Shown: one piece after another, positions 420 to 19,812 of the stretch | Position numbering within the stretch: position 1 is the stretch's first letter | Layout of the letters: each line of letters opens with the position of its first letter | The notes under the pieces: model-generated | The model's input: only the letters and a program-made list of their open reading frames with translations | Told to the model about the DNA's origin: nothing | Databases searched by the model: none | Assembly (NCBI GenBank): GCA_025786725.1 | Contig: JAHLTZ010000004.1 | Span: 558,001 to 622,000 of the forward strand | Direction of reading: 5' to 3' | DNA: 64,000 nt | DNA from: Syncephalis fuscata S228 | Lineage: Eukaryota > Fungi > Zoopagomycota | Translations under genes and position numbers: made by a program

Positions 420-640
420 CTAAATAGTCCCCTCATAGGAGAAGACTGAACCCGCATCCTTAGCGGTGATTGTGTTGGTCTGAGATGGTCTGGCAAACTC
501 AGCTGGTCTGCCATTTCCACTTTATATTGATTTGATGATATGAAAAATTCTTACTAGCCATGACATCCTGATTCCACACCACCTGGCAGTTTTAACAGAC
601 TAAGATGGTTTGTTAAGTATGACCATTTATACTAATATTT
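420..640 (-). pseudogene. Fanzor/TnpB-like nuclease C-terminal relic 1
   Basis: Manual translation gives TILVC*NCQVVWNQDVMASKN, then a frameshift, then FHIIKSI*SGNGRPAEFARPSQ...EGTI*. This matches the Fanzor C-terminal pattern CxxC-x3-WNRD-x-(N/M)A-x2-N...RPxxFxR. It contains stops and one frameshift. Confidence 0.8.
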
Positions 641-9204: not shown

Positions 9205-10180
9205 TAGTATGATTTGGTGGTCAAATGACTATTTTTAATAACATTTGCGTAATTGAACTACACATTCGAATTCGGATTTATTAGCTTGAATGAGACAACG
9301 GCCCGTAGGACCTAACCGCGCATTTGCAGCATTTGCCTGCCACCCCTGAACTACACATCCAATCTACTGAACATGGGAACAAGTGGTGAGTGACATCAAT
9401 CATCAAATACTCATCATTATAGATTTATTATACAGTATGCATATATCATCACAGTATGTGTTATTACTATATATACCCGTCACCTTGCTTGATTAACATT
9501 AAAAGCATAACTAATTGGCATGGCTTAATTTATTTATAAATAATTTCAATAAAACAGAACTCCGTTCATATTCATATTATTTGTTTTACCAATATAACTC
9601 AGTGAACAAACTAAGTGCAATATGTTAATTTTATTAATAAAAGAGTTGGAACCATACCGACAACGGCTATAGACAGCGTATAGCCAATATATAATAAAAT
9701 AATAAACATTATAATAGATACACAATGTTGAACGAGATTAGCAATGTTTAAGTTATTGAGCATATATGCATGAACAAGATGACCAACATTAGTTGAACTT
9801 TTTTAATAATAAAGCTAAAATAAAAATAAATGTATTTTTGATACAGAAAGACTATGCAAGTATAGAATGATATATAAATGATAAATGTACGGTAAGAAAG
9901 CGTATAAAACGATGTTAAAGTTATAGTGCATATAACGTAATGAGGGAAATGAATGAAGTTTATTAGAACGTATAAACAATAGAATGTATCTAATATGGAA
10001 TAGAATAGTATATAATACTGTGAAATAGAATGAGGATGATATATGTAAATAGAGTATATATGTGTGCTGAATATATGCATACTGGATAATGAATCTATGC
10101 TGATGGGTATTTTGGACCCTGATGTGAATTACGCTAGTTTCATGTTCAATAGATTGGATGTTATTAAAAATAGTTATTTG
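9205..10180 (-). mobile_element. Long-TIR element family A copy 2 (core inverted relative to copy 1)
   Basis: 9355-10153 is the reverse complement of 1138-1936, with two substitutions seen by eye (copy-1 positions 1262 and 1575). TIR arms present on both sides. Confidence 0.9.
9266..9346 (-). mobile_element. 81-bp insertion with 12-bp target-site duplication; possible 5'-truncated non-LTR retroelement
   Basis: TGAACTACACAT occurs at 9254-9265 and 9347-9358 and interrupts the family A TIR consensus. The insert is GC-richer than its flanks and has AATAAA near its minus-strand 3' end. Confidence 0.7.
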
Positions 10181-10209
10181 TTCACAAAAAACAAGGTGTG
10201 ATGATGTAA

Positions 10210-10335
10210 TGATTAAATAAAACTTACCACTTGTCCCATGTTCAATAGATTGAATGTACAGTTCAATTACGCAAATGTTGTCAAGTTTAGCCATTTAACT
10301 TCTAAATTATATTAAATGGTTAATAAATTGTTTAT
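10210..10335 (-). repeat. Solo, older family A TIR arm
   Basis: ACCACTTGTCCCATGTTCAATAGATTGAATGTACAGTTCAATTACGCAAATGT... Its reverse complement aligns to the family A TIR, and its outer part resembles 1053-1100. Confidence 0.75.
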
Positions 10336-13711: not shown

Positions 13712-14817
13712 AGCTTCGGCTGCTATTGTACGCGAGTTTATAGCATAAAGGCCAGTAATAACACGACAGACGAAAGGTAAGAAAAGGCGATATAGAGATA
13801 AGAAGGTGAAGAATAAGAGTAGAGATGATACAACAATGCTGCAAGTAACGACTATAGTTTGCGCTGTCCTTTCGACTAAGCTGGTTAGAATGCAAAATGA
13901 TTGTAGTTGTAGTAATAGAACGAGTTTTACCAACACAAACTGGCACCAAGTCAAGGCGGTGATAGCAATGCAAGAAGCACTACACGTGGAAAGCTGTTCG
14001 GTGGTTGTGGATGTGCTTTAGGTGAGTGTGAGTGACCGAGCGAACAAATGGGTAATGGGTGTCCCCAAGCAGGATATCGTATAGTTCAGTGTGAATACTG
14101 TTTCACGCTTCGGTGTTCTACATACATGTATAACGCCGACACGCATCAATATCGGCCGACGACCTTATATATCTACCAGCAGCGACAAGGCCAAGCACAA
14201 GCCAGTTCACAAAGAAGAGCGTATAATCCGGTTTAAATGCGGCTTTTTATCTTTACTATGTACCGCAAGCAAATACTGGATTTTTTATCTACAGCCAAGA
14301 AGCAAGCAAAATGCGCAGCACGCAAATAAAAATAGCATACAAATAAATGAAAACGATGGTGCTTGGCAAGTAAACCAACAACAATGAAAACGACTTGCAA
14401 ATGAAGAAACGAAAGATGACTACAAGTGCTGCAATGTCAAAGGCGACAGCTCTGTTAATACCATGAACAAATCGATCAACAGCGGAGAACAAATTAAAAT
14501 AACTAATAAAAATGATCAATAGACTGTTGGGCCTGACCCATATCAATATTAAGCAATACGAATAAAATGGTTGAATTTTACTTTGACTCCCTGTCCTTAA
14601 ACTGGGATAAAAAGATCAATAACTTGAATAGTAAGCCGTCGATCATTTTTTACTACTGAGGAGTGTGATTTGTCGATGTAATGTTATGCCAACTTTATTT
14701 GAATAATCCAATAGCAAGTAGCAGATGATTCAAGTATTGTAGGCTGGCGTAATTACAATTGGTTAGATTTTATTTTCCCACATTGAGTTTCTAAAGTAAA
14801 ATTCGTTCCAATTGAAA

Positions 14818-15174
14818 TCATGTCGTCGTTATACGCAACATAGTTATATTACTTTTTATTAAAACGCTGTTAATAAATTGATTTAAATAAATAACGTAAA
14901 ATACTATTTGATTTCTTTGGAACATTTGAGGCTGACTATTGTCGTTGTTGGCCATGTGTAGGAAGATTGATCGAATATGAATAGAAGCCATATGATTGCA
15001 ATTCCATGTCATTCCGCATTTGTTATTGTTGCATCTACGTACAACATGGATTCTTGCATCTGAATGGTCTGTTCTATTTTCTAATATTCTACTGTTGCAT
15101 TTTGGGCATATTTGTGATGTAGGATCAATATTAATATAATTATTATAAAAGTTGTTTATTAAACAGCCATCTTC
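14818..15174 (-). pseudogene. Fanzor/TnpB-like nuclease C-terminal relic 2
   Basis: One open frame: EDGCLI...IDPTSQICPKCNSRILENRTDHSDARIHVVRRCNNNKCGMTWNCNHMASIHIRSIFLHMANNDNSQPQMFQR. This is a degenerate RuvC-II (IDExxTSQ), Zn ribbon (CxxC...Cx4C), RuvC-III (WNRD to WNCN) and RPxxFxR tail. The catalytic E and D are lost. Confidence 0.85.
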
Positions 15175-15419
15175 TTATAGTCAATCTGACTAAATAAATG
15201 GCATTTGAACAATTTATATTATAATGACAATATATATATTAAGCAATAATAAAGATAACCAATTAATTACATTATTGTATTGAAAATTACACATAAATTA
15301 ATTAATGTTGGATGCAATATTATACATTTTATAGTAATGAATGGGTGTTTAATTGTGTCTAAAAGTGAAGGAAATGAAATGAGTAAATAAAAAATGATAA
15401 AAATTGCTGTAACTATACA

Positions 15420-15555
15420 TAATGTTAAATAATTTATTAGTAGACTCATGTGATTCAATGTTAGACCAAATTGACATCTTTACTTGATTAAACTACACAT
15501 TTATTGTTCTACTAAACATGGAACTGGATGGTAAGTGACATTAAATATCAAATTA
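15420..15555 (+). repeat. Degenerate family A TIR arm nested in element B
   Basis: ATTAAACTACACATTTATTGTTCTACTAAACATGGAACTGGATGGTAAGTGACATTAAATATCAAAT aligns with the family A TIR as seen at 9251-9410. Confidence 0.6.
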
Positions 15556-15938
15556 TAATGCCTTGAATACTTTACAGCAACAATAACATGGATTAACATT
15601 TATCTATTTATTATATCCTATTGTAAGTAACATGAAATACTATTTAACATTTATTAACACTGATATTGGACATTAAAGATAATACTGGTTAATTGACACT
15701 GATTAATTCAATCAAAGTTGATGTGGCACTGCTTTAACAAACTCTTCTCAGTATTAAAAACTAATCGACGGTTTATTGTTCGAATTATTGATTTTTTGTC
15801 CCAGTTTAAAGCTAGGGACTCAAAGTACAGTAGCTCCCATATAATAAAGTAAAAATTACTCTAGAATATCTAGCCCAATGTTTTTTATTGCAAAAAAGCA
15901 AGTAAACAGTTGTTGTAGTAACGCTCATCATTTATTAA

Positions 15939-17290: not shown

Positions 17291-18248
17291 ATGAATTTCT
17301 CTGCTGAAAATAACGCTCCTACGTTGGGTGCGCGTTTCCAGGGCGATACCTGTAAGTGGTGTTAAGTATGGACCATTGTCAGCATGGCTAACTAGATAGC
17401 TGTGTTGTGTGTTAGTGGAGGAGCGTCTTGTTCGCTATGTGTTCCAAAATGCCACATTCAACGATGCCGAGAGCGTGGTCAAGACGATGGATCGTTATGG
17501 CCATGAAAGTGAAGAACACTACATGTTTGTAGGAGACGACAAAGGTCCCATCATCGATGAAGCTATTCGTGAGCGCAAGCCCAAGATTGCTTTTGAATTG
17601 GGCGCCTACTGCGGCTACAGCGCCGTTCGGTTTGGCAAGCTTATCAGAGAGCTGACGCCGGGTGCCAAGTATTATTCCTTTGAATTTAATCCCAAGTATA
17701 TGGAAATTGCCACTGAGGTATGTAACCAAGATGCACCACCAGATTGGCTACAGTAGCTTACTAATATCACACGCACTACTACTCCATGCTTGCCATATAT
17801 AGATCGTACGCTTCGCTGGCCTATCCGACGTGGTTGAGGTAAGGGAATATGTTAGATGGCCAGTATTCTTCCTAATGCACCCGCTGTACAGTTTACACAA
17901 GGCGCGTTCAGCGACTCTATCGATGGCTTTTTGGCCTCTCATCCAAGTGTGAAACACATTGACTTTGCACTAATTGACCACGTCAAGCAATTTTATCTCA
18001 AAGATTTGAATTTGATGGAAAATAAAGATCTTATTATTAAGGTGGGTAGATTAACAATAATATGGTATGCTGCTCATTAGTTGCATCAGGATACGGTTGT
18101 TGTAGGTGATAATATCATTTATCCCGGCACACCAGAATACTACGAGTACGTTAGCACCAGTCCCCACTATCGTACCGTTCTTCATAAATCCAATGTGGAA
18201 TATCGCAAGGAGGTTGAAGATGCCGTTGCCATCAGCATTCGTTTATAA
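17291..18248 (+). CDS. COMT: Catechol O-methyltransferase-like protein, paralog 1 (5 exons)
   Basis: MFVGDDKGPIID, ELGAYCGYSAVR (SAM motif I), LIDHVKQFYLKDL, VVVGDNIIYPGTPEYYEYV. Confidence 0.9.
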
Positions 18249-18831: not shown

Positions 18832-19812
18832 ATGCCATTTTCCGCGGATAGTCAATTAACACTATTGGACAACGGCTTTTACGGCGACACACGTGAGTGT
18901 CAATATAAGTTTGCTTATTCATAATATAATTATATTTGCTATTTTGTATTTATCGTTTATCACGTAGGCGAAAAACGCATACTCCACTATGTTCTAGAAA
19001 ATGCAACACCAAACAAACCAGATAGCGTCATTAAAACTATGGACGAGTTTGGCTATACCAAAAAAGAGTTTTGCATGTTTATAGGCGACGAGAAAGGCGC
19101 CATTATAGACGATGCCATTCGGGAAAATACTCCCGAAATAGCATTGGAACTAGGTACATACTATGGCTACAGTGCAATAAGATTTGGCCACTTGATGAGC
19201 CGACTGGCTTACGGCGCAAAGTATTACACATTTGAGTCAAATGCTATGTTTGCCCGTATTGCCACTGAGGTTAGTAAAAAGCACAGAACAAGCCTAGCTA
19301 TGAATAACATTTATTGCCTACTCTGTTGCATACGCCACAAAGCTTATAAATTTTGCTGGCCTATCTCATGTAATAGAGGTATGAATAATAGAATACCACA
19401 TAGAAGCTTTATTTAATGGAATTAACGCTTATTATCTATAGATCGTTCAGGGTACTTTTGACCAGACGCTAGAGAAGTTTTTGACCTTACATTCCGAGAT
19501 AAAAAGCATTGATTTTGTGCTAATTGACCATATCAAAAATCGCTATTTAAGTGATATAAAACTTATGGAAAAAAATAAATTAATTAAAATAGTAAGTTAA
19601 CAGATAATAAATATGTAAATTAAGTATTTCAAAACTAATTTTTTTATTTCAAGGACACTGTGGTGGTAGCTGACAATATTATCTTTCCAGGTGCACCCGA
19701 TTACTACCAATATGTCAGTACCAGCTCACATTATCACACCGTGCTATACAACACCAATCTTGAATATTCTTGTGATGTCAAAGATGCAATTGCTATAAGT
19801 ATTCACCAATAA
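18832..19812 (+). CDS. COMT: Catechol O-methyltransferase-like protein, paralog 2 (5 exons)
   Basis: MFIGDEKGAIID, ELGTYYGYSAIR, IDHIKNRYLSDI, VVADNIIFPGAPDYYQYV. Intron positions match paralog 1. Confidence 0.88.

Follow-up and report, generated by a model that had tools for sequence, protein, structure and literature searches.

Syncephalis fuscata S228 carries a short minus-strand reading frame that resembles the end of an RNA-guided nuclease and that lies between inverted repeats. Two questions arise at this locus. Is the peptide a piece of a Fanzor nuclease, and what kind of element carried it there? The locus is part of a 64,000-nucleotide stretch of contig JAHLTZ010000004.1 (positions 558,001 to 622,000, forward strand), which we refer to as the window; coordinates given alone are positions in it. 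A preliminary description, made from the sequence without database searches, had placed a Fanzor relic inside a MULE-like element with terminal inverted repeats (TIRs) at 14569-15838. Our main reading is that this segment is an old, immobile, non-autonomous transposon copy made from the 3' ends of two Fanzor1 lineages that lie head to head. We give this reading a probability of roughly 0.9.

We found that 14569-15838 is a 1270-bp repeat unit, with edges of homology that are sharp on both sides. In comparisons with more than 70 other copies in the genome, coverage fell from 24-35 copies to approximately zero directly outside 14569 and 15838. The limits that had been proposed therefore bound a genuine repeat unit. 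A terminal motif of 19 nt had 227 matches in the genome, compared to one for the reversed control, far more than chance would produce, and the Fanzor tail peptide gave at least 150 scored matches in the S. fuscata genome, from 851 candidates. By homology, the number of these tails in the genome is no lower than 150 and is likely to be several hundred. The list of open reading frames held none the size of a transposase gene within 14569-15838. The unit has the properties of a non-autonomous (MITE-like) TIR element: it is short, free of a transposase ORF and present in many copies with common, sharp ends and inverted termini. The only near-identical match (~99-100%) was on contig C207. We ruled out that this match is a recent insertion; it is an assembly duplicate, because 769 bp of unique flanking sequence is also ~100% identical.

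We found that the peptide matches the C-terminal end of Fanzor1 nucleases. The preliminary description had quoted the minus-strand frame 15174-14818 correctly, and its 118 codons are open. The 64-aa ORF mentioned there is the ATG-started tail of this frame (14818-15012), the only part that the ORF list holds. When the window frame alone was compared to Pfam, the top match was to PF07282 (Cas12f1-like TNB, formerly OrfB_Zn_ribbon), with 18.3 bits (E = 0.0026) against a curated cut-off of 26.3 bits. Because the window copy's own score falls below this cut-off, the assignment to Fanzor1 rests on the family and on full-length profiles. Eleven of 13 aligned family members matched PF07282 (best E = 7.5e-10), and this domain scored above the cut-off at 26 places in the S. 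fuscata genome (all 87 candidates scored).

A profile of the window family (A1), searched against 1.84 billion representative proteins, matched 494 at E <= 1e-3. The domain was C-terminal in the 10 long matches that we scanned with Pfam, and the best PDB match of the profile was Fanzor1. We also made a profile of 617 positions from 23 full-length relatives (A2). In these relatives the RuvC-I Asp (GxDPG) is nearly invariant, and the Glu in DEYxTS, four Cys residues and the Arg-Asp of RuvC-III are invariant. Among solved structures, A2 matched the Spizellomyces punctatus Fanzor1, SpuFz1 (8gkh; E = 1.3e-60), the Parasitella Fanzor1 (1.2e-47) and the Guillardia Fanzor1 (4.6e-45), compared to only 1e-10 for the mimivirus TnpB-like (Fanzor2-like) protein L79 and weak matches to TnpB/Cas12f. 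Single full-length relatives, compared to the PDB by phmmer, gave no usable matches; only the profile succeeded.

The window frame matched A2 with E = 1.2e-20 (70.6 bits), over positions 531-604 of 617 only, and the same tail was found in the genome search with E = 8.3e-18. None of the remaining six-frame segments of the element matched A2. The zinc ribbon in the window copy consists of CPKC and a second pair, C-x4-C, aligned with the four invariant Cys residues of the relatives. The tail is 49% identical to relative P0005 and 41% identical to the Rhizomucor protein P0008. These matches identify the peptide as the C-terminal end of a nuclease of the Fanzor1 type, as had been proposed. The preliminary description had named two findings that would count against this identity, best matches to a non-RuvC zinc-finger family and homologs without a D-E-D triad; the matches were to the RuvC family, and the triad was present. 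It is highly improbable that the peptide is a fragment of an unrelated zinc-ribbon protein or a chance open frame: the score of the window copy alone is too low for the Pfam threshold, and matches to further zinc-ribbon families had E = 0.006-0.7, but PF07282 led the Pfam matches and recurred in 11 of 13 family members, Fanzor1 led the PDB matches of both profiles, the frame fits the full-length profile, and the external homologs carry the catalytic triad.

Comparison of the copies divided the element into the following parts, in which A and B denote two Fanzor lineages that are only 28-35% identical to each other.

14569-15838, no strand assigned: the whole composite non-autonomous element, defined by sharp stops in homology to more than 70 copies and without a transposase-sized ORF.
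14569-14760, plus strand: left arm, made up of the right-end region in inverted orientation and a spacer of ~94 bp; the TIR is alignable at 14579-14666, and the arm occurs elsewhere only in copy L002 among the fetched copies.
14761-14809, minus strand: canonical 3' terminus of the lineage-A element, internal here; the homology of most copies ends exactly there.
14761-14907, minus strand: conserved non-coding 3' region from the Fanzor C terminus to the element end, alignable in 15 copies; by position, a candidate remnant of an omega-RNA scaffold.
14821-15174, minus strand: open frame of 118 codons, in which the tail is preceded by ~17 initial residues of non-Fanzor sequence.
14908-15123, minus strand: Fanzor1 tail with a RuvC-II remnant, C4 zinc ribbon (TNB domain), RuvC-III remnant and RP..F-type C terminus, from profile A2 and PF07282.
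15395-15420, minus strand: an internal, degenerate version of the terminal repeat, at which the short lineage-A form has its 5' boundary; coverage falls here from ~60 to ~34.
15425-15603, plus strand: stretch from the interior of a lineage-B Fanzor element, lying upstream of the coding tail; 85% identical to 2028-1847 of copy L068.
15603-15619, plus strand: deletion junction; longer copies have 466 bp here with the lineage-B Fanzor tail (L068 1381-1846, without a counterpart in the window).
15619-15838, plus strand: lineage-B 3' non-coding region and right end, including the right TIR arm (15741-15827) and, at the terminus, the 19-mer with 227 genomic matches; 82% identical to L068 1380-1160.

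The abundant short form of the family is ~630-670 bp and extends from the canonical lineage-A end to the repeat equivalent to ~15395-15420; the flanking sequences beyond are unrelated. Its two ends have a 12-nt core in common, inside an imperfect TIR of ~24 nt. The first ~22 nt of the left arm in the window copy are a variant end type that contains this common core, TACTTTGACTCC. The lineage-B element is seen whole in L068, where the B ORF (L068:1432-1824) has intact DEY and RD motifs; the B coding tail is deleted in the window copy. A third Fanzor lineage is present in L069 and L072. The earlier suggestion that this fungus hosts or once hosted a Fanzor1 family holds: at least three lineages are present in the genome. 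The alignments show a composite: in the window copy, a lineage-A tail, followed by the hairpin end that belongs to it, is joined to the 3' end of lineage B. Either nested insertion or recombination between ends could have built this composite.

The preliminary description had given TIRs of ~140 bp that were 82% identical over 84 bp. Inverted ends at ~82% identity are indeed present. The alignable arm, however, measures ~98 bp instead of ~140 bp, and the two ends are unlike each other in their outermost ~10 nt. We found one pair of inverted arms at 14610-14666 and 15741-15797 (57 nt, 81%) and a second at 14579-14613 and 15793-15827 (35 nt, 86%); blastn merges the two pairs into a single match of 88 bp (81.8%). 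Among the fetched copies, only the window copy and L002 have this long-TIR form. The long-TIR appearance that lay behind the MULE idea is thus a rare variant; most copies carry the imperfect TIR of ~24 nt and a hairpin end.

The minus strand thus retains ~72-90 codons from the end of a lineage-A Fanzor1 gene, then the 3' non-coding region of that element and its hairpin end. The plus strand retains the lineage-B 3' non-coding region and terminal repeat, with the coding tail deleted, and the left arm is an additional inverted copy of the lineage-B end repeat. We infer the following origin. Internal-deletion derivatives would have kept only the sequence next to the transposon ends, which in Fanzor/TnpB elements means the 3' part of the nuclease gene together with the region for the guide RNA. 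A transposase from another locus would have copied these derivatives in trans. The copies would then have decayed by point mutation, and the Fanzor lineage would have gone extinct.

The window copy was described earlier as dead, and the alignment bears this out. The position of the catalytic Glu is Ile, the Arg-Asp of RuvC-III is Cys-Asn, and the RuvC-I segment and everything else upstream of RuvC-II, including the N terminus, is absent. All three catalytic residues of the D-E-D triad are gone, ~12% of the profile length is kept, and the architecture of a full-length Fanzor1 (N-terminal WED/REC and RuvC-I, about 560-1040 aa) is not present. The frame opens with ~17 residues of unrelated sequence that most copies have in common; they mark a family-wide breakpoint just upstream of RuvC-II. 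Every copy has at most 81 open codons upstream; L074 and L075 reach slightly further in that direction. DEY is still found in L075, and WNRD in L073 and two others. Among 64 non-redundant copies, the RuvC-III motif is WNCN in 23, WNRN in five, WNCD in five and WNRD in three, and 49 of the 64 have stops in the 72-residue core. The core of the window copy is 80-92% identical to that of other copies (median 87%). This pattern is that of neutral decay, not of a conserved inactive variant. The fragment is incapable of acting as a nuclease and would have no present function; we assume that it is not expressed.

The preliminary description had also raised the possibility that intact relatives exist elsewhere in the genome. 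We searched with full-length queries (the 568-aa P0005, the 863-aa Rhizomucor protein P0008, and profile A2), and genomic matches were confined to the last ~140 positions; genome-wide, every A2 match was within positions 467-610. These full-length searches scored only the best candidates, and we therefore repeated the search with a profile of the N-terminal part only (A3). There were five matches to A3, on contigs C317, C46 (two matches, within 518000-519000 and 582000-583000) and C24. The match at C317:733831-734270 spans positions 303-450, takes in the RuvC-I region and lies in two open frames, one of 235 and one of 131 aa. None of the N-terminal fragments was near a PF07282 match (all 87 PF07282 candidates scored). 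PF01385 (OrfB_IS605) had no match in the genome, a result that is uninformative for divergent Fanzors. A protein search with residues 430-863 of P0008 found no Syncephalis protein, and one with the lineage-A ORF gave no candidates above the word filter. In short, neither the full-length nor the N-terminal searches detected an intact Fanzor gene in the assembly; in place of the suggested intact relatives there were C-terminal tails and the five N-terminal fragments, none of which adjoins a tail.

We looked for evidence of how the family moved. The 9-mers flanking the window copy are alike at 5/9 positions, and those flanking L002 at 4/9. For 18 pairs of ends (some of which use the internal repeat of long copies), the identity of the flanks at 8-10 bp was 0.37-0.41, compared to 0.33-0.35 for shuffled pairings. 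The best flank identity over lengths of 4-11 and shifts of -4 to +7 was 0.44, less than the mean maximum of the null (0.48). There was no signal of a target-site duplication (TSD) of 4-11 bp across the 18 end pairs, and inspection by eye of the true short-form pairs only gave no consistent duplication. A 6-mer that occurs at different offsets beside the window copy was rejected as a TSD; it is a chance match in AT-rich sequence. We found no autonomous partner, TSD or empty site that would prove a mode of mobilization.

It is possible, though unlikely, that the family moved without making a duplication, either as a rolling-circle element like Helitron2 or by a single-strand mechanism like that of IS200/605 or IS607, with the hairpin near the 3' end as the recognition structure. 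Such movement is consistent with the lack of a detectable TSD and with the strong 3' subterminal hairpin that better-preserved copies have a few nt from the end. This hairpin, of ~45 nt, is next to the canonical lineage-A terminus (the equivalent of 14761). It is strongest in L057 (-11.4 kcal/mol, z -5.3), has z of about -3 in L063 and L028, and is not significant in L003. In the window copy it has been destroyed by a 6-nt deletion (-0.8 kcal/mol, z +1.2). The inverted repeat of the short form is likewise short and asymmetric, and pairs a segment near the 5' end with an arm of the 3' hairpin. There is also a precedent, in that Fanzor1 is carried by non-autonomous Helitron2 elements in Chlamydomonas (PMC3627910). 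However, a 5' terminal hairpin, one of the Helitron2 criteria, was not significant in any of five copies, and the 3' repeat is inside the hairpin, whereas the definition of Helitron2 puts it upstream. In addition, a TSD of 2-3 bp, as made by Tc1/mariner and PIF elements, would escape notice, because the copies are only ~80-87% identical.

A second possibility concerns what the short elements did when they were active. Fanzor and TnpB systems have their guide RNA encoded at the gene's 3' end (PMC10711439), from where it runs on into the end of the transposon, and 14761-14907 may, from its position, be the remnant of a guide-RNA (omega-RNA) scaffold. The short elements could then have been satellites that provided only a guide and were served in trans by Fanzor from full-length elements. 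The derivatives of all three lineages keep the 3' tail of the gene, the ~150 bp downstream of it, in which the guide RNA would be encoded, and the end, and their copy number is high. Simple deletion would yield the same pattern, because internal-deletion derivatives must keep their ends. The single-sequence fold of 14761-14907 has z -1.7, the consensus fold of the 3' region across 15 copies is weak (-5.9 kcal/mol) with no convincing covariation, and the region has no match in Rfam. Together with the absence of a detected intact nuclease from the assembly, these results make the satellite idea doubtful.

The element had also been described as MULE-like, and we consider it improbable that it is a non-autonomous member of this group (MuDR superfamily). 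Several points favor the idea: the window copy has inverted ends of ~98 bp, the S. fuscata genome has MULE transposase domains, of which four exceed the Pfam cut-off and lie in open frames, and MuDR-type carriers of Fanzor1 have been described in Mucorales. Those of Rhizopus, Phycomyces and Mucor were placed in MuDR on the basis of TIRs and TSDs of 9 bp (PMC3627910). The flanking sequences in S. fuscata argue against it. TSDs of 9-11 bp define the superfamily, and neither the window copy nor L002 has a 9-bp TSD. The best flank identity of the 18 pairs is under the mean maximum of the null, the long TIRs are found in only two fetched copies, and no MULE locus was linked to the termini. A MULE is not supported, because a 9-bp duplication should stay obvious at a copy identity of ~80-87%.

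A neighboring ORF at locus L071 is 100% identical to a protein of S. fuscata, which confirms the host. The named close relatives of both lineages are all from Mucorales: Thamnidium, Mucor, Parasitella, Blakeslea, Cunninghamella and Rhizomucor for lineage A, and Absidia, Rhizopus and Backusella for lineage B. Lineage A is 47% identical to a Thamnidium protein over 99 ungapped residues. Transfer from host to parasite is conceivable, because Syncephalis parasitizes Mucorales. Dense sampling of Mucorales together with ancient, shared paralogy would account for the pattern of affinity equally well. A combined proposal, that the elements were guide-only satellites of two or three Fanzor1 lineages, which may stem from the Mucorales hosts of this mycoparasite, strikes us as rather improbable.

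The closest known elements are ROr-4 and PBl-3, as well as MCi-4, of Mucorales, which have complete Fanzor1 ORFs and 9-bp duplications and lack a transposase gene (Bao and Jurka 2013, PMC3627910). The S. fuscata family is like these in that the host is an early-diverging ('zygomycete') fungus, Fanzor1 is flanked by inverted ends without an accompanying transposase gene, and there are multiple lineages per genome. It differs in that the copies keep only the last ~90-140 codons and have no detectable duplication, that most of them have a short, imperfect TIR and a 3' hairpin, and that the host is a zoopagomycete mycoparasite. SpuFz1 (8GKH) and the Fanzor1 proteins of Parasitella and Guillardia (9CF0, 9CER) belong to the same family, and their zinc-ribbon and RuvC-III region is the part to which the window tail can be aligned. 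In contrast to the window copy, a catalytically dead remnant, these proteins are complete, active RNA-guided nucleases.

CRe-1, CRe-2 and CRe-3 of Chlamydomonas (PMC3627910) are also similar: these Helitron2 elements are high-copy, non-autonomous carriers of Fanzor1 that have a hairpin at the 3' end and an inverted repeat that is short and asymmetric, and many of their copies are 5'-truncated. In contrast, the Syncephalis family has no significant 5' hairpin, has its repeat inside the 3' hairpin, and shows no variable duplications of 7-19 bp.

Bacterial TnpB-only insertion sequences and the protein-less derivatives of IS200/605 have no TIRs and depend on a Y1 or serine recombinase. They may offer an analogy, in that they likewise keep the ends and the guide-RNA region, need enzymes supplied in trans and make no duplication. 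They also differ in being prokaryotic.

We found no literature that pairs Fanzor with the genus Syncephalis; this negative covers the genus, not the phylum Zoopagomycota. The segment at 14569-15838 is a genuine Fanzor fossil, yet it is ordinary transposon debris, and it yields no usable nuclease. Elements of this kind are known (Bao and Jurka 2013), but the host lineage is new: the segment is a record of Fanzor1 transposons from Syncephalis, a member of the Zoopagomycota. Annotators of S. fuscata can use it to account for many short 'orphan' ORFs with a zinc ribbon, which form a large class there. It also provides two modest leads: whether tail-only derivatives persist through a retained guide-RNA module, and whether the exclusive affinity of lineages A and B to Mucorales reflects transfer from host to parasite. 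The results also indicate that entire Fanzor families can go extinct, with mini-elements that consist of a tail plus an end remaining.

The best-preserved Fanzor tail that we saw belongs to lineage B, the second Fanzor lineage, and lies at locus L068 of the S. fuscata genome. Its DEY, RD and four Cys are all intact, and in the genome search it scored 144.6 bits with the A2 profile of full-length Fanzor1 relatives. About 100 nt upstream there is an intron-like stretch, GTGAGT...ACAG. The window itself contains a smaller second Fanzor relic, and a search with an N-terminal-only profile found pieces of the remainder of the protein elsewhere (contigs carry the prefix G000).

L068:1432-1824 (G000:C339:387036-387428), minus strand: lineage-B Fanzor tail, 131 open codons
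Window 423-591, minus strand: smaller second Fanzor relic with A2 profile matches; repeat homology at ~176-402
G000:C317:733831-734270, minus strand: Fanzor1 N-terminal match covering the RuvC-I region
G000:C46:518315-518593, C46:582515-582793 and C24:557715-557885: further Fanzor1 matches, N-terminal three quarters
G000:C90:23312-23599, C351:15327-15614, C336:21728-22015 and C339:307853-308140: PF10551 MULE domains

In the profile search, the window relic matched A2 positions 568-583 (E = 0.0011) and also 593-614. A broken zinc-finger pair is followed by a RuvC-III-like W-x-Q-D motif, and the DNA after the relic shares 82% identity with the 3' region of a different subfamily (loci L009-L011).

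In the whole genome, only the C317, C46 (two) and C24 loci matched Fanzor1 within its N-terminal three quarters. At C317 the RuvC-I region is in open frames (235 and 131 aa), and there is apparently no zinc-ribbon tail nearby.

G000:C207:10032-11194 is ~99-100% identical to window 13800-14962. Transposition was rejected as its origin because the unique flank is duplicated as well; the match is a haplotig or assembly redundancy.

Other features were noted. An AT-rich dispersed repeat family (window 9748-10294, minus strand; L063:163-492; L074:2876-3199), which gives rise to similar Tyr/Ile-rich pseudo-ORFs in several loci, has no relation to the Fanzor elements. Two similar plus-strand ORFs ~1.6 kb apart (window 17409-17756 and 19039-19416) appear by eye to be tandem paralogs of a gene resembling small-molecule methyltransferases. 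L061:431-4405 (G000:C68:531430-535404, minus strand) is a Ty3/gypsy-type retrotransposon, possibly young or active, with an uninterrupted 1324-aa ORF resembling, by eye, protease, reverse transcriptase, RNase H and integrase.

The MULE transposase domains (PF10551, 65-73 bits) lie within open frames of 204-243 aa, indicating that the S. fuscata genome contains MuDR-type elements with coding capacity.
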